From Adineta vaga (Eukaryota; Animalia; Rotifera), in the NCBI GenBank assembly GCA_021613535.1, contig CP075495.1, forward strand, positions 5,394,001 to 5,458,000: a stretch of 64,000 bases of DNA, read 5' to 3'. The stretch's first letter is position 1; the number at the start of each line of letters is the position of its first letter. The notes beneath the pieces were generated by a model. That model worked only from the letters and a program-made list of their open reading frames with translations, was not told the origin of the DNA and ran no database searches. A program made the position numbers and the translations under genes. Below are positions 13,914 to 60,382 of the stretch, one piece after another.

Positions 13914-15055
13914 TCAATATGGATGCATTGAATAGCATCTTCCTTTTTTTTGGATTTCTTTCCAATATCTTATCTGTGTATTCGCATTGTGTAGTGACAT
14001 ACCCGATTTTACGCTATATTTCGTAGTTTCTTTTTTTATTGTTGTTGGTGCTACTTTGTTTGTATAGCTTGTACTGTCTTTTTTGTTATCGACTTTGGAT
14101 GGTACTGGAATAACAATCGTTTCTGGTTGATCTTTTGATTTGAAATAGGATGAATCTAAATTACAAATAAGTAAAAACGTAGTAATTATCGAAATTTACT
14201 TCTAACTAGAAGATTCCTATTCCTCACTGAATAGCAGTACAGTACACAATACTCACCAACTTCAGTTTGCTTTTTTGAACTTTCTGATTTTGCAGTGGCA
14301 GTAGAAGAAGCTGCTCCTTTCCATGGCTCTTCTAGAAGTTCGAAAGGTGGTTGTATTTGTTTAAGTTGAATAATGATTAAATCAGGATCTTTTTTCGATG
14401 GTTGCAAATGACTTTCGACAAGAAACTGACTGCCAGGTAAAATAAGTATTTCGTCTTCATCTTCAAACGAAGAATGTCCACGAATTTTCCGTGCATTAAA
14501 ACATTTAATACTAAACATGGTTCGTTTGCCTTCTTGACCAAGAAAGAGTTCCGATTGAAGAACTGCTACGGATCCTGTACAACTTGAAAAACCCCACCAT
14601 GTGATTGTCTTGCCCACTTCATAATCATTCCGTAAATCATGTGGAACTCCTCGCCAAACTGTCTCGGTACATGATGGTAGTTTAAAAAGTGCTGTTAAGA
14701 AGAGCTTCATATATGATAACCATGGTTTTAACAGTTTATTACGATTTTTTGATCGTAAAACAGAATTCAAAGCGACGTACAGACATTGATTATTGGGTGA
14801 CCATTCAGTAGTATAGAGAAAGATTGCAGCCGATTCATCCTCATTCAAACCATCCTTACATGTATCGCAATTACCTTTAGCGATGTATGCACGTCGACGC
14901 ACATCAGGACAGACGTCTACGATACATTCGACGGCCTCTTCAAGGGTAACCAATGGAAGAGATTGGTAACCTTCAATAGGCTGAAGAAGATTACGTGGTT
15001 CATCAACAACATCAGCAAAACGATCGAGACGAGTTGTATGACTAGCTGTTGCCAT
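13914..15055 (-). CDS. ART-family (arginine-specific type) ADP-ribosyltransferase, probably 2 exons
   Basis: DESAAIFLYT, LNSVLR, VWRG, WWGFSSCT, FEDEDEILILPG give the R-S-ExE triad; donor GTGAGT near 14255; 3' end approximate. Confidence 0.88.
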
Positions 15056-15515
15056 ATTACGTTTTGAATTCAAGATACTGAATTTACTTTATCGATGTTT
15101 TTTTCTTTCTTTGTATTCCTACAACAAAAACAAATCGTTGCCACGTTCTTCGATGCTTTTCGTCTTTGTTGAAGCGAAGCAGTAATGGGAAAAAACCATC
15201 ACGGATAAAGTTTTCGAAACAATTGTAGATGTCTCTAGTCTACAATCATGAATGTGGGAATTAGAATGCCTTAAAAGGAACGCATTTAAATAAAATATTC
15301 ATTTTCATATTGAAGACTTCTAGAATTTTATCAAAATTATTAATGAATAAATCAAGCAAATTGAAATATGATTACTATGATTTTCATTGGCTTTTACCAT
15401 TTCAATGAACCATCCAATCCGATATCAGTTGTATCATATTATTCCATCATCGTCTTTTTCTACAGCAAAAAGAAATAGAAATTCATTGATCAATATGTAA
15501 AAACAATTAGTTCTT

Positions 15516-23920: not shown

Positions 23921-26900
23921 ATGTTTACAACAGCAACTCGTACGATATTTCCAATGATATTTGGTCGTCGTCATCCAGAGACATTGAGTGATGCAGCATC
24001 GACACCATTACAACTTATTCGTTTACAGATTGAACAAAAAGTCAATGGAGATTTTCCACTTATTCATCAAGTTGCAACAACAATGACATTCAAAAATACA
24101 CATAATATTATTCTTGAAGGTGCATTCGAATTTACATTACCAGAAAAAGCTACCATTTGTGGTTATGGTAACGTATTATTGTTTTGATTTCATTCATATT
24201 TTTTTTTACTGGTTTTGATATGTTTAGGTCTTGATGTAGATGGGGTTATTGTAGATGGAGTTATTGTTGAAAAGCAAACGGCTCGTATCATTTTTGAAAG
24301 CGAAGTTCGAAAAAGAGTTGATCCTGGTTTTGTAGAATTAGTAACAGGCAATGTGTTTCGTACTCGAGTATATCCTATTGAACCACAAAAAACGCGAACA
24401 ATTCGTGTTATTTATCAAGATCAAGGTATACCAAATAATTCTGGTTTTCAATATCATATACCTGTTCAATTTCAAACACCATTGGAAAGTCTTGATATTG
24501 TTATCACATGTATTCAACAAGGAACAACAAAACCGTATTTTCTCACCGCCACAAATCAATTCAATGCAACATATCCAAACTTTAACAGTAAGGGAAATGG
24601 AAACTATCACTTTGAATGGCATTTAACGAATGTTCAACCATCTACTGGTGGTGAACAAACATTAATATATGTATTGCCCGATTCTCTAAAACCAATTCTT
24701 AGTGCTGTAGAAAAAAGTTTGAATATAGGTGCTTATTTTGCTGTTAGTTGTGCATTACCAACACTTACGGAACGACGAATAGATCAACTTGATTTACCAA
24801 CAAAAACAATTTGTGTTCTTTGGGATGCAAGTTTAAGTCGTTCGAATGCAATTGAAAATCGTCTTCTAGAATTAAATGCATTGAAGAAAATCTTTGATAT
24901 CTGGTTAACTCGTCTGAGTCAAATTGATGTTATTATTATCATTTTTCGAAATGATATGGAACAAGCCAAATTATTTCAACTTCAATTTCATAATTGGAAT
25001 GACTTTATGAAGATTTTCGAAGATTTACCATATGATGGTGCAACAAATCTATCACAAATTGCAACAATTAATCTGACACAAACAGTAAATTATTATTTTC
25101 TTTTCAGTGATTGTATTTCAACCATCGATAATGTTTCGGCTATCGAGCATATTAATCAAATTTTAAAGCGCCTCTTTGGATTTTTAATGGTAATCATCTT
25201 CATGAACCATATGATAGTGATTTTGTTCGTTATTTAACACAATACAATTCACAAGGTGGTGGTTATCTAAATCGGGAGAAATTACAATTGAATTCTAATG
25301 ATTTACTAAATATGATTGAAACGATTCAAATCAAATATATTAAACTTCATTCAACTACAACTATACAACAAATTTATCCAAGTGATACAATATCTATTCC
25401 ATCGAATACGGATCGATTTCTTCTTGTTGGACAAATACCAAATCCATTGCCGAATGCGGTGGAATTCGAACTTGAATTTTCCATGAATAATCAAACAACA
25501 CGTTTGCCCATTTCTGTCAGTATGCCAACTGATGTATTGGATTTTTTTGGACTAATTCGCCGTCTATGGGCACAACAGAAATTAAATCAATTAAATGCAT
25601 TTAAGGATAAATATAAAACGGAAATCATATCTCTAGGATTACAATATTCATTAGTAAGTCATTTTACTTCATTATTAGTACTTGAAACCTTGCAACAACA
25701 TCTTCAATATCGTGTATGTCCAGCAACAACGCGTATAAATCTACATCGACAATATATGCAACATCAAACAAAAGAAAATAATCTAAAAACAAATAATCAA
25801 TCAGAAATTCTTCGAAAATGGAATGAAAAATGCCAATGGTATGATAAAGTGATCACGGATATTGATCGCCACCGAGCTTATTTACCTAAAACTACGCCCG
25901 TATCATCTATATACGGTAACACATATACTTCATACGGTTCACCATCCTCTTCTCCGTTCGGATTTAGTACAGCATCACCTGCATATGCTTCGCAACCGTT
26001 CGCTTCTCCTACATCGAATACAAGTACACCAGCATCAGTATTTAGTTTTGGTAGTTCAACAGTTTCATCAACAGCTCCTACCCTCGAAAACTCTCGAATA
26101 CACCAACCATTAGCTATGCCAAGAGTGGCCACAGTCTATCATCCCAATCTTCAACAATAGATGATTCGCCAGCAATATCATTTAAAGACTACAATCCTCA
26201 ATTATCTTCAATTACACGTTTATCATCAGCAGGTGATCGAACAAATGCATATATAATTTATCTCAATGAACGAAAATCATATCGTGAATCACCATCATTT
26301 TATTTCGATATGGCATCTTTCTTTTTCTCATCGACATCATCTTCATCGATAATAGATCAATTCAATCAAAAATCAGAAACTATTCAAAAACCTGATAAAG
26401 AATCTCTTAAATATGGTTTACGTATTTTAACAAATATTGTAGAACTTGAATTAGAAGCACCACAATTATATCGAACAGTTGGATATAAATTAATGGAATT
26501 AAAAGAATGGAATCTTGCATTAGATATCTTTCAAAAAATCTATTCCTTACGCTCAGATGAACCACAATCGTTACATGATCTCGCAATTGTTTTAATTGAA
26601 CTTCAACAATATGAAAAAGCATTACAATATTTCAAACAAATTCTTACTCAAACATGGAATGATCGATTTCGAATAATTCCCATTATTGTTCTATCAGATT
26701 TAAATCGATTGCTAGTACAAATGAATAGGACAACACCAGAAATTGATTATCGTCTTCTACGTCATTTACCAGTAGATATTCGAATTATTGTTGAATGGGA
26801 TACAGCAGATACAATCATTCAACTTTCTATCCAAGAACCAACTGGACAAATCTGTAATAACTATTCAGGATCATCTAAAACTGATATTGGTGGATATATC

Positions 26901-27605
26901 ATTAATACACCCTATCAAAGTGAACAACCCATTGAATATCTACTTCGCAAAGCAATTAATGGAATATATTCAATTAGTTTAACGTATATAAATAATGCTC
27001 AACATACATTAATTGGTGCAACAACAGTTTTAGTAACTATCTATAAATATTTTGGATCGATGAATGAAGAAAAACAAATTCGAACGGTACGATTAACCAG
27101 TCATAATCAAACGGTAGATGTTGGTCATATTGAATTCGGTGATTCTAATTTAGAAAAAATGAAAGAAGAATTAGAAAAGACAAAAGATGCATATCGTCGC
27201 CTTCAAGATCAATTATTAACTAGTAGAAATCAATCATCCATTCAACATCTAAATGTTACATGTGATGGATGTTTAAAAGTACCGATTGTTGGTAATCGAT
27301 TAAAATGTCTGTTTTGTCCTAATGTTGATTTTTGTCAGAATTGTCATTCATCTATGAATCATAAACATGATTCAACACATCCATTCATATGTATTTCTGA
27401 TTCGACACTTTATACGTCATCTATTCACCTTCAAAATATTAGTGAGCTAGTGCATTTAAACATACAATGTATATCGTGTGCTGCATCACCTATTGTTGGT
27501 ATACGTTATCATTGCATCGTTTGTAAACTTGATTTATGTGAAAAATGTGAATTTCTTGGTTCACATAATCTAACACATCAACGTTTGAAAATGATTTATC
27601 CATGA
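23921..27605 (+). CDS. VIT + vWA-like + TPR + DUF2135-like protein with two C-terminal ZZ zinc fingers; two frameshifts in this sequence
   Basis: [18 protein letters not shown]|GLDVDG (intron 24168-24228), [53 protein letters not shown]; ZZ motifs CDGC..C..C and CISC..C..C; frame changes near 25160 and 26090. Confidence 0.82.
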
Positions 27606-28570
27606 CAAAATTCAAAAACACTATTTCTTTTTTTTCTCTTTTATTGATATGTTTTGCGTTGATTTTTCTATAGAATTTTTTTATTATAATAAAAAGTTAA
27701 ACACTTCGACATTATTATCAAGAAAATACACACGATCTGAATCGGGTAAGTAGTAAATGAGACAATAGAAGTTTATGTACAAGAAGAAAATTCTTCATTT
27801 AATAATTATTTCTAGCAAATCTCAAATATCAACAAATACAAATTTCTATTTCATAGATGATATTAATTTCAATAGTGACATATGAGAAAATAACTAAAGT
27901 AGACTTAAAATATTAATTTCTTACGAACGAAATCAATACTCACAAAATACAACAACAACAACAACATGTTCGAAGAATAGAATAAAAGTATAGTGCAATG
28001 TCAGAGATGTTATCAATAGTACACGATCGAAAAGAACGTATTCCGTAACTTCAAAGAAATTAATTATTAATTTTATATTTTCCTGACTGTGATTCTAATA
28101 TACACTTGTACGATGGGTATGCATACGTCAATATATTTTCTTCTTTCTTTCGCTTTTTCGTCAATGTCACGGGTAATGTATCAATCAATCGATACATTCG
28201 GACAAAAAAAATCAGTCAAGGATGATAATACTAGCCACATATATAAGACATAGGCGAATGCATACTTTTCTTTACGTTTTAGACAGAAAAATCGAAATGA
28301 TTATGTTATGTCAATAGTGTTGTTGTTTTTCATGATAGAATATATCAGAAGAAAAATATCGTGTTGACGAAAATAAAGATTTGTTTACTGACAATCTGTG
28401 GACGAGAGAAAAAACAAATTAATAAGCATTCTATATTTTGAAAGAATGCGAGTGAGTATAAAGATTAAAAGGAAAAGATTACGATCACTGTAGTTCTTAA
28501 GATAACATTTTTTATTTTAGATCTATATAGTTATTTTATTATTATTATTTAAACAACTAGAGAATCATTC

Positions 28571-29596
28571 ATGTTTGTCGAAGCGTATGTACATCACCTA
28601 TTAACAATCGCTCGTTCGAAACATGTTCGTACATTATCCTTAGCATTGTTTGTTATTATATTTATATTCTTCTTTCGATATAATATAATAACGCTTGTTT
28701 ATATTGTTCAAACATATCTCAGATGGTATCGTTTTTCTTCTGGAGTAATAACTTCAAAAGATAATTTCGATACGACAATGGCAAGTTATCCATTGAATCA
28801 AACATCAGCACAGTGGAATTATACTGATGCTGTTCCGGCTATTCTACATCATATTGTTATTGGTAATATTGATCTAAGTCAACGGCCAACATGGTTAGCA
28901 GCACGAGATTCTTGTTTAAAATGGCATCCCAATTATGAATATCGATTTTGGAATGATTCATTAGCGGAAGTATTCATTCAAAAAGAATATCCATGGTTTT
29001 TCGAAACATGGAAAAGTTATTCCTATCCAATTCAACGTGCTGATAGTTTACGATATCTTGTTCTATATCGATATGGTGGCATTTTTCTTGATATGGATCT
29101 TCATTGTCGCCGATCATTAGGACCACTTCGTCGTTTTGATTTTATATCACCAGCTGCTTATCCTGTTGGTATATCCAATGGTTTTCTTATGGTTTCAGCA
29201 CGTCATCCATTTTTTGAAGTTCTTGTCAATCAATTAACATTATTTGATCGAAATTTTATTCTACCTTATGCAACAGTTATGTTTTCAACTGGTTGTATGT
29301 ATTTATCAGCACAATATTCACTCTATAATGATCGACATCGATTAAGATTATTAGATTATAAACAGCATCGCTTGAGTGGACGTATTTCTACACCATTATT
29401 TCATCATCAAGGCAGTAGTAGTTGGCATGCAAACGATGCAGCATCTATCAAAAGAATATATAATATTCTCTATCGTCTGATATATCATCGAAATTTTATT
29501 TTTTTAAATTTATTTCTAATTATTATTGTTCTATCAATTTTATCATGTCGACGAAGAAATGAATCTAACAAATTAGGAAAAAACATTTTGCTGTAA
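28571..29596 (+). CDS. Glycosyltransferase family 32 (DxD), fungal inositolphosphoceramide glycosyltransferase-like (GntA or SUR1/CSH1 group)
   Basis: N-terminal TM; YPIQRADSLRYLVLYRYGGIFLDMD; PVGISNGF; HPFF; PYATVMFSTG; GSSSWH; C-terminal TM; intronless CDS. Confidence 0.9.
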   Translation: MFVEAYVHHLLTIARSKHVRTLSLALFVIIFIFFFRYNIITLVYIVQTYLRWYRFSSGVITSKDNFDTTMASYPLNQTSAQWNYTDAVPAILHHIVIGNIDLSQRPTWLAARDSCLKWHPNYEYRFWNDSLAEVFIQKEYPWFFETWKSYSYPIQRADSLRYLVLYRYGGIFLDMDLHCRRSLGPLRRFDFISPAAYPVGISNGFLMVSARHPFFEVLVNQLTLFDRNFILPYATVMFSTGCMYLSAQYSLYNDRHRLRLLDYKQHRLSGRISTPLFHHQGSSSWHANDAASIKRIYNILYRLIYHRNFIFLNLFLIIIVLSILSCRRRNESNKLGKNILL

Positions 29597-29743
29597 ATGA
29601 TTGATCTGTTTTTTTTTCAAAAGGAGTTCGATCCGTCCATTAGTAGCAAATTCTTTAAAATATTAAATTTTGAAATAAAGAAAATATCTAATGATGAAGA
29701 ATCTAAATTATTTTTTGTGCTACTTTTTTAGATTAAATCGTTA

Positions 29744-30766
29744 ATGAATCGAATGGGCGGACATTTACGAAAACTTTGGTTTAACGAACGAAAATATTCT
29801 CATATCTTATTAGATGAAACCGATGAAGCGTTATTACCAAACAACTACGTACATAAACATTCCTTTCGAATAACCAATATTCGATTACTTCCTCGATTTT
29901 ATCAATGGATATGTAGCCATAAATGTTTATTTTTTCTAATTATTTTTATGGGTGTACCCATATTACTGTATCTATTTCTACTTGTTTTATCTACAAATCA
30001 AGCATTGATTCCAAAAGATTTTCGAACAAATGTTCTGCGACGATTGTTATTAGTTGTTGCTCATCCTGATGATGAATGCTTGTTTTTCTCACCTACGTTA
30101 CGTGTTTTACAAAGTCAACATGATATTGAATTGAATTTGCTAGTATTTTCACGTGGAAATCATGTAGGTTTAGGTGATATTCGTGCTCGAGAATTACTCG
30201 GTTCATGTCGTGTATTAAATATTCCACACGAACGTTGTTTATCATTAGATTTACCTAATATACAGGATAATCCGAAAGTTTGGTGGTCGGAACAACAACT
30301 TATTCCTATCATTAACAAATACAGTCATTTATGGTCTATCGATTTACTTATTACATTCGATGATCAAGGTGTGTCAGGCCATATAAATCATCGAGCTGTC
30401 GCATCGGCTATTCGTCAAATAATAACGCGCAATAATAATACAATGATAAGAAAAGCATATGAATTAAAATCAGTTTCGCTTCTTCGTAAATACTCATCAA
30501 TCTTAGATATTTACGTGGTATTTATGTCATTCATCCCACGATTTTTTCGTTCTCTATTTTCCCACGTTATTCCGTATAATTTAATTTCTCCACCTGATGC
30601 ATCTCGAATGCTTTTAATCAATACTCCTCATGATTACATGGTTGCACGTACTGCTTTTGCTAGTCATCAAAGTCAATATAGTTGGGATCGACATCTATAC
30701 ATGATTGTCAGTCGTTATATGTTTATCAATGAACTAAATTGTATAGAAAAAGGAAACATAGTTTGA
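29744..30766 (+). CDS. PIG-L/LmbE-family GlcNAc-inositol-lipid de-N-acetylase (GdaA/GPI12-like)
   Basis: TM anchor; LLVVAHPDDECLFFSP; ITFDDQGVSGHINH; HQSQYSWDRHLYMIVSRY; intronless. Confidence 0.92.
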   Translation: MNRMGGHLRKLWFNERKYSHILLDETDEALLPNNYVHKHSFRITNIRLLPRFYQWICSHKCLFFLIIFMGVPILLYLFLLVLSTNQALIPKDFRTNVLRRLLLVVAHPDDECLFFSPTLRVLQSQHDIELNLLVFSRGNHVGLGDIRARELLGSCRVLNIPHERCLSLDLPNIQDNPKVWWSEQQLIPIINKYSHLWSIDLLITFDDQGVSGHINHRAVASAIRQIITRNNNTMIRKAYELKSVSLLRKYSSILDIYVVFMSFIPRFFRSLFSHVIPYNLISPPDASRMLLINTPHDYMVARTAFASHQSQYSWDRHLYMIVSRYMFINELNCIEKGNIV

Positions 30767-30826
30767 TATTTTGTTGAAATAATAAAACATAGTTGAACGA
30801 ATATCGTTATTTTGAATTTACATTGA

Positions 30827-32544
30827 TCAATCACAATGACCTCGTGGATAATGTAACGGTACACCATCTTTCAATAATCTTTCTTGTAAACGATTGATAT
30901 TCACTACTTGTACGTCGATATGACCATCTAAAATTGAATAAACAGCTGCATATCCAGCAGCACCACCTAATAACATAAAATGCGGTTCTACACGTGTAGC
31001 TGAATAGGCTACATGTGTCGCAGCATGACATACAGGAACAAGTAAATTTGTGACTTCATTTCGTTTTGGTAATAGTATCGAATAAGGTATTTCAAAAACA
31101 GGTCCACTTTGCGATCCATTAACATGTGCAATTTCTTGAAATATGGCTCCTTCATTATTGACATACGATCCATTTACTGTACGTGTTACAACATGAATAT
31201 CATATCGCCAACTACCTAATGCAATGGTATCATTACGACATAAACCACTAAGAACATGATTTTGTGTAAAAACTTGATCATTAACTAAACGAAGACCTTC
31301 ACGAACATAGAGTTGCGGGGGAATGTGACTATTTTCAGGCCATTGATCATTGCATAGTCCATAGTTTTCTATTGACTTTCGTGTTGCTTCTGGAACTAAT
31401 GGAGATGTTAACAGATACCAAAGCATACCGAGAACATAATCAGACACACTTTGTGCAACATAAAGACGATCTTCTGCTGTTCCATTAACATAATTTCGAT
31501 TTATATTAATAGCATCACTTGTAAAAGCACTTCCAGCACTGTCACACATATCAAATTTATCACCGTCAGGATAACCACGATAGGATAGTATATCAACAAG
31601 TTTGCTTAATGGTGGTCCTTGTGGATATTGTTTTGATGCGATCAATGAATTGATATATCTTTGTAGAATAATAAAATTATTTGGATCATAATTAGTTGGT
31701 TTTACAAAGGGTGCTTGTTTCTTCTTTGTTGTTGTAAGACACAAACGATATGAATATCCCATCATATTTAAATCTGCAGAACCAACTGATTCTAATTTCT
31801 CTGATGAGACATAGGGTGCTAATGTTCCATTATCTAAACTAGCATTCACAGGATAATTAGGAATGAAATTAGAAAATGATGTATATGGTCGAACACCAGC
31901 GAATGATTCATTATATTGATCATGTGATTCTCTTCCCCATGTAAATGATGCACCAGAAAAGCGAACAAGATCACCCTCATAACTAGCATCAATCCATACA
32001 GATGCATTCCATACACGTTGACCATTCTTTGTCGTTACTTGAACAATACGAGTACCATTCATGACAATACTTTTATCTATCAATGGTCCAACGTCTGTAA
32101 TCAGTTGAATATTTGAATGCATCGAAAGTAAATCAAGAAAACTTTGTCGACTAATATTCATATCTGGTTGATAGATTGGATGTGAAACATTTTTGTAATA
32201 CTTATAATTATTATTCACCCAATCTTGTACAATAGATCCTGGAACTAGCAATCAACCAAAGGGAAGATATCGGTAAAATTATACAAGAATTTTAGTATGA
32301 ATAGCTTACTGGTAACTTCGGAACCAAGATCACGTAAACCAATACCACCAGCTGCAGCCATTCCACCTATGTAAGATGTTGGTTCAATGATAACAATTGA
32401 GAAAGATGATGCTAATCGAGCTGCTGTAATAGCTGCAGCAATTCCACCAGGTGTTGCTCCAAAAATGGCAACATCGTAAGCAATACTTACTGAATAGTAA
32501 GCGAATAGGAAAATGATACTCGAATATAAATGTAATTTAAACAT
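30827..32544 (-). CDS. Secreted FAD-dependent oxidoreductase (microbial-type FAD_oxidored family), 2 exons
   Basis: Signal peptide; YDVAIFGATPGGIAAAITAAR; IGGMAAAGG; IDASYEGDL; GRES..Y.ESFAG; PPQLYVREGLRL; IPYSILLPK; HVAYSATRVEP; one intron at about 32309-32245. Confidence 0.88.
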
Positions 32545-33392
32545 TATTACGATAAAATTATCGTCTAAACCAGGTAAAAAACAGCCATCTTTTAATAGAT
32601 ACTCTCTTATCTTTCCTATCTATGTCTCTTACTATTGGTGAAGATTATCTTGCAAAATAAAAACTAACAGCAACTACATTATCAGTTCAAGATACGATAT
32701 TTCTTTTTACATCTAATTTGGGTTAGAACATTCTATTATATTTTATGAAATTCCTATTATAGTTTTCAATATTAATTCGGGAATAATATCTTTATTTAAA
32801 TTTTTCTTACTAGTAAATGATCGAATCATATAAACTTTTCGTTGTAGATCGTTCCTCTTTCATTCCACAAAGAAACATTTAAACAGAAAAAAAAGAACGG
32901 AAAAGTAAATGAAATAAACTTGAATGAAAATTTAGTACATTATATTAAAAGAAACATAAAAAGAGTATCATAAATTAAAAGCGAAAGGACAAGAAAGAAG
33001 ACGAAAGTCTATCGCAAACGTTTTTCCATTTCCATTAGGTTATTGAAAATCGAAAATGTCATCGATAAGCTTAAAGCAAGAAAAGACAAGAATGAAAAGC
33101 TATACCAAATAAATCATATGAAACACCGTTGCCCCCTATCTATATGACATACACAAAAAAATGTTTGTTTTATATACATATAACAAGGTATGTTCAGTAC
33201 AAGTTCACAATCAACGTACAGAAAATAATCAATCACACGTTGTTCTAAGGAAAGTAATCAACTATGATAACGATACACAAGACATCACTGTTTAAGACAC
33301 ATTTTGGTTGATTAAATGAATGAAAAAGAAATCTTATAAATGATAAAAGAAATACGTAGTAAGATAATAATATTCATAATTTTGCATTAACT

Positions 33393-57908: not shown

Positions 57909-58354
57909 TGTAAACTATTATTCTGATGATATTTATTCATTATATAATAAAATAATAGAAAAATACGAAGTTTTTCAGTTGATTTATATATAAGATTGTT
58001 TATTTTTTTCTTCTTCTTGTTGCCTAAGCAATTTCGTATCATCTTTCAAACGAAAAAAAACGACGAAGACGAATAGAATAGCCAGTATGAATATATGGTC
58101 ATGGTTCATTGAGTTGCTCGTTCAAGTGTTCTATAAGTTCAATTACTTCTTTTTTTCTTCTGTATTTGTGATACATACATATATCTACAACAAAACTAAA
58201 TCAAATTTCTCAAACGATCAACGAACAAGTGTTGTTTTTCTCTGTCTCTTTCGACTAGTGACACGTACAGGTGAATCGGAAAATCAAAAAGAAAACCAAC
58301 CGTATCGACTCTTATTATTTGTTTACTCATTCTATCAATCAAAAACAATCAACG

Positions 58355-58595
58355 ATGAATGAAACAGTTGACAGTGTTTATCGTTTCGTTACTGATCAAT
58401 CATCAACAGCATACAGTAAAATGAATTCATTCGTTTCATCGTTACGTCGTCGTCTGGATAAGGTACTTACCGCTACTGCATCTCCTAATTCATCACCAAC
58501 ACATTCGTCATCTTTCTCAACGAAAGACGGTGAGATTCTTTTGCTTAAAGATACTATAAGAGATGCTTATCTCATGCTTGCTTTGATCGATAATG

Positions 58596-58629
<34 letters not shown>

Positions 58630-60382
58630 ATTAAAAGAATATTTGCATGTTGCTGAAAATTTACAAAAACAATCATGTTCACCAGCTACTGCACGTCGTT
58701 TAATTACTGAAATACGTTCATTAATATCTTTATCTAATTCAGATGAATATTATTCATCCAGTAGCAAATATGATCAACAAAGAAAACGTGAAAAAAATCT
58801 CAATGTTTATGATACATTGAGTAAACATCGTCCACTTGCACGATCCAATCCAAATGTACAAAATTCGAATAAAAATCTCGAAGCGAGTAAGCCCGTTCAT
58901 ATACAAAGACATTCGCTTCGTAGCTCTATGCGTAATTTATTAAAACGTCGTACAATAAAAATTCCATCTAAAAAATTTCTAGGCCCATCTACTGATTCGC
59001 AAACACCGCATATATACGAATCACTCGATACACCATCGCCTGAAATTACACCACCAGTCGATTTATCATCATCATCCGCACCTGAACAATCGTATACATC
59101 AACATCATCACCAGCAATCATAAAATCATCTTATTTACTTCCATCATCTATTGTTGTTCTCGATCATTTTACAACAAATCTTTATTTAGTTGTCAATTCA
59201 ACATTGAATCAATTATTAGTCGTTTTTGGATCAACAAAAATTCATACAATTAAATTATATGATACAAATGGAAGAAAAATTCATAATAATGATTTAATTT
59301 TACAATATAAATTTGAAGATTTACATGGATATAAATTATTATCATCAGCTTTAAATAATAGTTCTGAAAATCGTTTAATTGTTAACGAAATACGTGTTTA
59401 TGTTACGGAATCATTAAATGAAACATCATCAAATCAAACACTTAAACAACGTTTATTATTTTTTGATCAAAATGGTAATTATATGTCAGCATCAAAACGT
59501 TTACCAATAACTAATGAATTATTATTTGTTGACGTCGATCGTTTATCACCCTCGATTTATGCCTATGATGGATTAAATCTTATAAATTTAGATCGTAATT
59601 GGTCAACGAATGTGGAAAATATTGATTGTATAGCTGCTGGTTCAACATTTCTTGTTTGTTTACATACAAAAACGAATCAAATAAGTATTTATAATAATCA
59701 AACAGGTTCGTTCATATATCGTTGGTTAATAACAACACACAATATTCGTCATCTTCAAACTGTTTATTTATGTGTATCACGTCAAGATTTCATTTATGTT
59801 CTTGTATGGAATTGTGATGTTCATCCTGTAAATAATCTTGTTCTTGTTTTTGATCAAGAAGGACAATTACGCCGAGAATATTATACACCAAATCGTATTA
59901 TACCAAATATGCATGGAGCATATACATATGATATGACACTTGGCGGTGGTAGTGGTGGTGGTGGACATCAGACAGGTAATCCATTTGGTAACTTAATGCG
60001 TCGTTCAACATCAAAAGCAGTTCCACAAACAATGGCATGGATGCAGCAACAACAACAACAACAACAAGCAATGTGGAATCCAAGTGGTCGACATCATCCA
60101 CATATGTGGCCAGCAAATAGTCCTGCTCATCAAAGAGCACAAATGCAACCGATGTATCATCGAGATATGGCAAGTCCTTATGATATGTATCATCATTCTC
60201 AACAGCAACAACCACAGCAACATGAAGATAATACTTTATTTCATGCACGTTTTATTGCTATTACTGATGATGATACATTGATTCTTTCGAATATTATTGA
60301 TCTTGGTCTTGATGAAGAAACACAAGAAAAAGCGGTAGTTAATGTTAGTCGAAAGATTTTATTTTTTCATATCGAACCTTGA
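58355..60382 (+). CDS. Intronless hypothetical protein of about 675 aa, possible C-terminal beta-propeller (NHL-like)
   Basis: Long ORF; beta-rich repeats IKLYDTNG, LLFFDQNG, ISIYNNQTG, VLVFDQEG, FIAITDDDTLILS; poly-N and poly-Q inserts. Confidence 0.7.
58592..58628 (+). repeat. (AAT)n microsatellite encoding poly-Asn
   Basis: Direct reading of the trinucleotide run within the 58355 ORF. Confidence 0.9.

Follow-up and report, generated by a model that had tools for sequence, protein, structure and literature searches.

The closest described counterpart of the locus reported here is the Af3c pathway of Aspergillus fumigatus, in which GntA adds N-acetylglucosamine (GlcNAc) to inositolphosphoceramide (IPC), GdaA removes the acetyl group, and mannose is supplied by OchC and ClpC/ClpB (PMC11218662; PMC5954224). 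The GntA, GdaA, OchC, and ClpC steps have been described together (PMC11218662), and the GlcNAc transferase GntA is said to be specific for IPC (PMC5954224). In Bacteroides, the main IPC synthase is BT1522 (PMC8791184). With respect to gene organization, a poly(A) site that abuts a trans-splice AG characterizes the operons of Ciona and the SL1-type operons of Caenorhabditis elegans (PMC1488885), and trans-splicing has been proposed to help transferred genes work (PMC6053224). One paper lists rotifers, in passing, among the lineages that trans-splice and that transcribe genes as operons. Within the literature that we searched, neither a characterized rotifer operon nor an IPC lipid from a bdelloid is reported. 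Foreign genes are common in bdelloids, and a fungal origin alone is ordinary there. IPC lipids have been reported in Ascaris and in one polychaete, so the statement that animals lack them is not absolute; to our knowledge, no GlcN-IPC core is known in an animal.

We analyzed a window of 64,000 nucleotides (the whole stretch of DNA examined; contig CP075495.1, positions 5,394,001 to 5,458,000) from the bdelloid Adineta vaga, whose genome comprises six chromosomes and 100.8 Mb. A first-pass annotation had described two same-strand, intronless, membrane-anchored enzymes separated by 147 bp in this window, and the ORFs, Pfam domains, and predicted transmembrane (TM) segments were all present. The first cistron (28571–29596, + strand) encodes a GntA-like GT32 glycosyltransferase of 341 aa (PF04488, E 2e-19) with two TM segments and a DxD motif. 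The second (29744–30766, + strand) encodes a GdaA-like de-N-acetylase of the PIG-L family (PF02585, E 4.5e-18), which is 340 aa long or 337 aa if counted from the second ATG. Both ORFs are uninterrupted in the sequence. Measured against Rotaria, dN/dS was ∼0.29 for the GT32 gene and ∼0.22 for the deacetylase gene; both ORFs are intact and transcribed, and purifying selection is acting on them.

The gene behind the pair, convergent with it, encodes an FAD-dependent oxidoreductase (30827–32544, − strand; PF12831; intron at 32245–32309; covered by RNA) and is outside the two-gene unit. It matches prokaryotic proteins at ∼30% and is syntenic in Rotaria. RNA contigs continue from the deacetylase gene into the oxidoreductase gene, and the 3′ UTRs of the two therefore probably overlap. 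Upstream of the pair is a large gene with VIT, TPR, DUF2135, and ZZ domains (23921–27605, + strand). Farther away in the window are an ORF with an ART domain (14186–15073, − strand) and a 703-aa ORF without a Pfam match (58271–60382). By Pfam, then, the immediate neighbors are the VIT/TPR gene and the oxidoreductase gene; transporter, OchC, and ClpC genes are not beside the pair, and their homologs lie elsewhere in the genome.

As references, we took the GT32 and PIG-L proteins of one A. fumigatus gene cluster to be GntA and GdaA, because the content of that cluster (a nucleotide-sugar transporter, a GT32, a PIG-L, a CAP59, and a second GT32) matches the Af3c pathway. The rotifer GT32 is 41% identical to this GntA (E 2e-77) and has the features of GntA, namely a DxD motif (DMD at residue 174), an MFSTGC motif (STGC at 239), and two TM segments by hydropathy (19–37 and 308–326) in the same pattern as in the A. 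fumigatus protein. An IQ-TREE phylogeny (LG+C20) placed it within a 54-sequence clade that holds A. fumigatus GntA (support 100/99) and is separate from the fungal SUR1-type clade and from a bdelloid clade with STGP; in this tree, it does not group with the STGP IPC mannosyltransferases SUR1, CSH1, and MitA. The assignment to the GntA subfamily, which the first-pass annotation had based on motifs, is thus supported by the tree. The motif contrast holds as well, with FSTGC in A. fumigatus GntA and HASQYSWDR in GdaA, but it is not absolute, as STGP also occurs inside the GntA clade, in members from rust fungi and in a second bdelloid pair. Donor specificity of GT32 enzymes can change within a clade. 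Inside the GntA clade, the tree leaves chytrids, rusts, ascomycetes, and an environmental group as alternative sisters of the rotifer protein. Its best matches are from bdelloids (Adineta and Rotaria, up to 74%) and then from fungi (∼40–55%). In the 120 matches listed for each member of the pair, no further animal appears by name except for one “firefly” entry; this GT32 match, labeled Photinus pyralis, is 99% identical to a Metarhizium protein, and we dismissed it as fungal contamination. A PDB search returned nothing useful for either protein. Across the A. vaga genome, there are at least 12 GT32 matches.

The deacetylase is 42% identical to A. fumigatus GdaA (E 9e-73) and carries AHPDDE at residue 106, HINH at 213, and HQSQYSWDR at 308, so that the metal-binding motifs are intact and the SQxxWDR motif of GdaA is present. 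It fell within a 40-sequence clade holding A. fumigatus GdaA (support 100/92, IQ-TREE), and this position, together with the WDR motif, supports its assignment to the GdaA subfamily, as had been proposed. Best matches are again from bdelloids (Adineta, Rotaria, and Didymodactylos, up to 71%), with fungi next at ∼40–55%. Hydropathy predicts one TM segment (64–82). In GdaA-clade proteins, unlike canonical PIG-L, the TM segment is preceded by a basic N-terminal tail, and positive charge is greater on the N side of this segment in 96% of them, compared with 8% of canonical PIG-L proteins. The charge of the tail in this clade fits a lumen-facing catalytic domain. The pair deacetylase has a tail of 63 residues like that of the clade, and its charge bias is weak (+2 vs. 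+1). Taken together, the trees and motifs make it very probable that the two proteins are orthologs within the GntA and GdaA clades.

Rotaria keeps the order of GT32 followed by deacetylase on one strand, and the oxidoreductase gene again lies convergently behind the pair; the order is also kept in Didymodactylos, where the GT32 gene has an intron. The linkage looked for in related rotifers is thus present in both genera. The same tandem order was found in three further metagenome lineages with upstream DNA (low GC), and among these genera and lineages, the gaps that were measured are 144–156 bp. A database model in Didymodactylos (L034:8001–10403) fuses the two genes, which is probably a misannotation of an operon. 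We examined 12 fungal loci in which both genes are linked. The deacetylase gene precedes the GT32 gene in 10 of these, which are distinct fungus-like metagenome loci, and the genes are convergent in the other two, A. fumigatus and Xylogone. A PAP2_3 gene of the AUR1 family (L125:20429–21190) is part of the gntA cluster in Xylogone. The bdelloid order, GT32 then deacetylase on the same strand, occurred in none of the 12, and two chytrid loci and one rust locus had no partner gene within the flanks examined.

These comparisons support a fungal origin of both genes of the pair, judged from sequence, and the pair would have been acquired before the split of Adineta, Rotaria, and Didymodactylos. 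They do not sustain the earlier suggestion that donor linkage was retained after one joint transfer, given the count of 0 of 12 and trees that single out no sister group for either gene. A joint transfer from a donor with linked genes is plausible; the arrangement in bdelloids, however, should not be taken as inherited from a fungal cluster, since the linked fungal loci examined use other orientations and the chytrid and rust loci have no partner within their examined flanks.

A. vaga has a second tandem pair of a GntA-like and a GdaA-like gene, on chromosome C3 (3917377–3919942; L022:3878–6443). Here too the GT32 gene comes first, and this pair is also tandem in Rotaria sordida and in one further bdelloid, with a gap that varies among bdelloids from 48 to 1473 bp. 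The second GT32 lies in the GntA clade as sister (100/98) to a fungus-like metagenome group of 50% GC, and this environmental sister clade has no PIG-L neighbor in the available DNA. For the two GntA-like genes of bdelloids, the AU test rejected a single origin (p=0.0002); a single origin of both GdaA-like genes was not rejected (p=0.17). Because it carries STGP where the first has STGC, the second-pair GT32 may have drifted in function. A metagenome contig (L037) considered as a nonfungal donor with the same gene order was discarded, as it groups with the bdelloid second pair.

We searched the A. vaga genome for the rest of the pathway, taking spliced genes exon by exon, so that the scores given for the IPC synthases are those of single exons. 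An IPC synthase was one of the checks proposed with the first-pass annotation, and two candidate AUR1-family genes were found, on C4 (L027:2045–3831) and C1 (L028:3109–4771), both containing introns and the catalytic histidine motifs. The last exon of one, searched as a single exon, matches yeast AUR1 (E 2e-15); it is ∼40–58% identical to Bacteroidota proteins, the genomes searched being bacterial and archaeal, and matches the NCBIfam phosphoinositol dihydroceramide synthase model NF052609 at E 6e-41. Among prokaryotes, the two genes come nearest to Bacteroidota. A bacterial donor of Bacteroidota type is likely for these genes on such matches. The genome further contains two CAP59 (ClpC-like) genes, one 35% identical to the CAP59 of the A. 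fumigatus cluster (E 6e-69), and two OCH1-like mannosyltransferase genes, all single-exon (L024:4372–5622, L025:4156–5082, L166, and L167). There are also several nucleotide-sugar transporter genes and two intron-containing SUR1-like GT32 genes with STGP (L030:3149–4260 and L031:3358–4371), the latter suggesting a mannosyl-IPC branch as well. None of these genes is linked to the pair.

From these parts, a pathway can be proposed. The unlinked Bacteroidota-type AUR1-like synthases would make IPC from ceramide and phosphatidylinositol (PI); in the Golgi lumen, the GT32 would transfer GlcNAc from UDP-GlcNAc to the inositol of IPC, and the deacetylase would strip the acetyl group to leave zwitterionic GlcN-IPC, whose glycan the unlinked OCH1-like and CAP59 enzymes could extend with mannose. 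That the genes are co-transcribed and the enzymes placed in the Golgi is inferred, as are the donor sugar, the acceptor lipid, and the product, with function assigned from knowledge of the families. GlcN-IPC is the product that we favor, with reasonable though not strong confidence; that identity to GntA and GdaA is just 41–42% counts against it. The same enzymes in the same operon might instead act on another acceptor, placing GlcN on PI to give free GPI-like lipids or on some other inositol lipid. PI is universal, and the IPC synthase genes are unlinked and of different origin. However, GntA is described as specific for IPC (PMC5954224), two IPC synthase genes have been retained with their catalytic motifs, and Xylogone keeps an AUR1-family gene in the same cluster, and we regard a different acceptor as unlikely, if still the rival to be taken most seriously.

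Expression of the pair was examined with assembled RNA contigs from four runs of four studies, mapped over 27200–32900. The contigs represent RNA, as the neighbor's intron is skipped in three of the four runs and 27773–28154 is without cover. Most of each ORF is covered, and no contig is joined within either. The boundary between the cistrons (29722–29732, + strand) consists of a pyrimidine tract and an AG (29730–29731), at which a poly(A) site and a spliced-leader acceptor coincide. In one contig (run X1), the GT32 message ends with 20 untemplated A after 29732, where the genome has no run of A. In one contig of another run (X13), the deacetylase message begins with nine loose letters, CTTACCAAG, joined at 29730. 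Together with the AG at 29730–29731, CTTACCAAG is the 3′ end of a sequence that occurs 54 times genome-wide before GT (control, 2), and the chance of a nine-letter match in register is ∼3e-6. This leader end presumably agrees with that of the spliced leader published for bdelloids. Run X14 has a further contig that begins at 29730, with seven loose letters. In all bdelloid pairs that we examined, a pyrimidine-rich AG, followed by AT, lies ahead of the deacetylase start codon. The 54 putative spliced-leader RNA genes (L040–L045 and 48 further sites) mostly form divergent pairs with a spacing of ∼168 bp, and C5 carries arrays of them; they were not matched by Rfam, which lacks a model for the rotifer spliced-leader RNA. 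An AATAAA in the GT32 3′ UTR (29674–29679, + strand), ∼50 nt ahead of the poly(A) site seen in the contig, is a candidate signal and recurs in Rotaria and in two metagenome bdelloid loci. Upstream, the sequence offers a possible acceptor for splicing or trans-splicing (28510–28522, + strand; AG at 28519–28520), ∼50 nt ahead of the start codon of the GT32 gene, and similar acceptor-like sites are found in the orthologous bdelloid loci. A scan for bacterial promoters gave no useful information.

Because the GT32 poly(A) site and the deacetylase leader share one AG (one contig each, from different runs), we consider it likely that the two genes are co-transcribed as a two-gene spliced-leader operon. 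In such an operon without an intercistronic spacer, the upstream message would end in poly(A) at the AG of 29730–29731, and the rotifer spliced leader would be trans-spliced to this AG, which lies 12 nt ahead of the deacetylase start codon. GlcN-IPC could also be made from two independent genes, with a deacetylase promoter inside the GT32 3′ region and trans-splicing from a short outron. No contig of the four runs crosses 29730, and a dicistronic precursor was not seen among them; animals that have a spliced leader commonly trans-splice single genes, the GT32 3′ UTR has its own AATAAA, and gaps in the second pair reach 1473 bp. Set against this are the exact coincidence of the poly(A) site with the acceptor AG, ∼50 nt downstream of the AATAAA, and the constancy of the first-pair gap across genera, which leave independent transcription rather improbable, and somewhat less credible than a change of acceptor.

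A more conventional account would make the deacetylase a second PIG-L of the GPI pathway and the GT32 a mannosyltransferase, their adjacency being incidental. Databases do label such proteins PIG-L or SUR1-like. In the trees, however, both proteins lie outside those clades, and the same two clades are linked in fungi. The genome also has its own SUR1-like STGP genes and its own canonical PIG-L. It contains three PIG-L-family genes, of which the third, on C5, falls among canonical-type sequences (mostly unnamed in the tree), and this answers a further check proposed at the outset: a separate canonical-type gene is present, and the pair deacetylase neither groups with it nor is the only copy. 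Descent of the pair deacetylase from a host PIG-L duplicate was rejected, grouping with the C5 copy giving an AU p of 0.0006. The C5 gene (L023:3910–4614) is a single exon in which Q replaces the histidine of HxSQxxWFR. The conventional account is accordingly very improbable. Of the refuting outcomes set out with the first-pass annotation, none that this analysis could address was observed; the operon layout, the second pair, and the bacterial-type IPC synthases were not part of that annotation. Contamination or a decayed relic, which intronless, fungus-like genes might bring to mind, can be set aside, because the pair sits on a 16.3-Mb chromosome, is syntenic in three genera including Rotaria, has host-like GC3 (0.16 for GT32 and 0.20 for the deacetylase), is under purifying selection, and carries the host spliced leader on its mRNA.

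The reading as a whole, a fungus-derived GntA/GdaA operon making GlcN-IPC in the Golgi, is the one that we prefer, with slightly less assurance than its product alone. A larger picture is possible, and we offer it tentatively: bdelloids may hold a mosaic of a complete fungal-type glycosylinositolphosphoceramide pathway, with a Bacteroidota IPC synthase and fungal-type GntA, GdaA, CAP59, OCH1-like, and SUR1-like enzymes, in which two different fungal lineages each contributed a GntA, which in both cases came to stand before a GdaA in a trans-spliced two-gene operon, the animal making zwitterionic GlcN-IPC. A multistep fungal membrane lipid pathway appears to be present in an animal, seemingly assembled from bacterial and fungal donors, with two foreign genes for consecutive reactions apparently wired into a spliced-leader operon. 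If this is true, mass spectrometry should find IPC, HexNAc-IPC, HexN-IPC, and mannosylated forms. Assigning a role in desiccation tolerance or in fungal infection would be speculation. The pair also provides a testable case of the benefit that trans-splicing has been proposed to bring to the working of transferred genes (PMC6053224). The fungal pathway, operons without a spacer, and gene capture by bdelloids are each known; their combination was not found in the literature that we searched.

Comparison with the known systems brings out what is shared and what is not. With canonical PIG-L/GPI12, the pair deacetylase shares the PF02585 fold and the metal-binding motifs, but it belongs to another clade, has a long N-terminal tail, and carries WDR in place of WFR. 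With the IPC mannosyltransferases SUR1, CSH1, and MitA, the pair GT32 shares the GT32 family, the DxD motif, and two TM segments, but the clades are separate, and the rotifer has two other, intron-containing genes of the SUR1 type. The catalytic motifs of Bacteroides BT1522 (NF052609) and yeast AUR1 are kept in two unlinked rotifer genes, which have introns. The Af3c cluster of A. fumigatus (NstA, GntA, GdaA, OchC, and ClpC) resembles the rotifer pair in clades (41% and 42% identity), motifs, TM layout, and linkage, and counterparts of its OCH1-like and CAP59 members exist in the rotifer genome. In contrast to that cluster, the rotifer pair resides in an animal, with two genes linked head to tail and without introns, whereas the fungal pair is convergent with introns; the rotifer messages are proposed to be resolved by trans-splicing, and the product is a prediction. 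As in the operons of Ciona intestinalis and the SL1-type operons of C. elegans (PMC1488885), the upstream poly(A) site abuts the downstream AG with no spacer. Many known operons join unrelated genes, whereas the members of the proposed rotifer operon were horizontally acquired and would catalyze consecutive steps.
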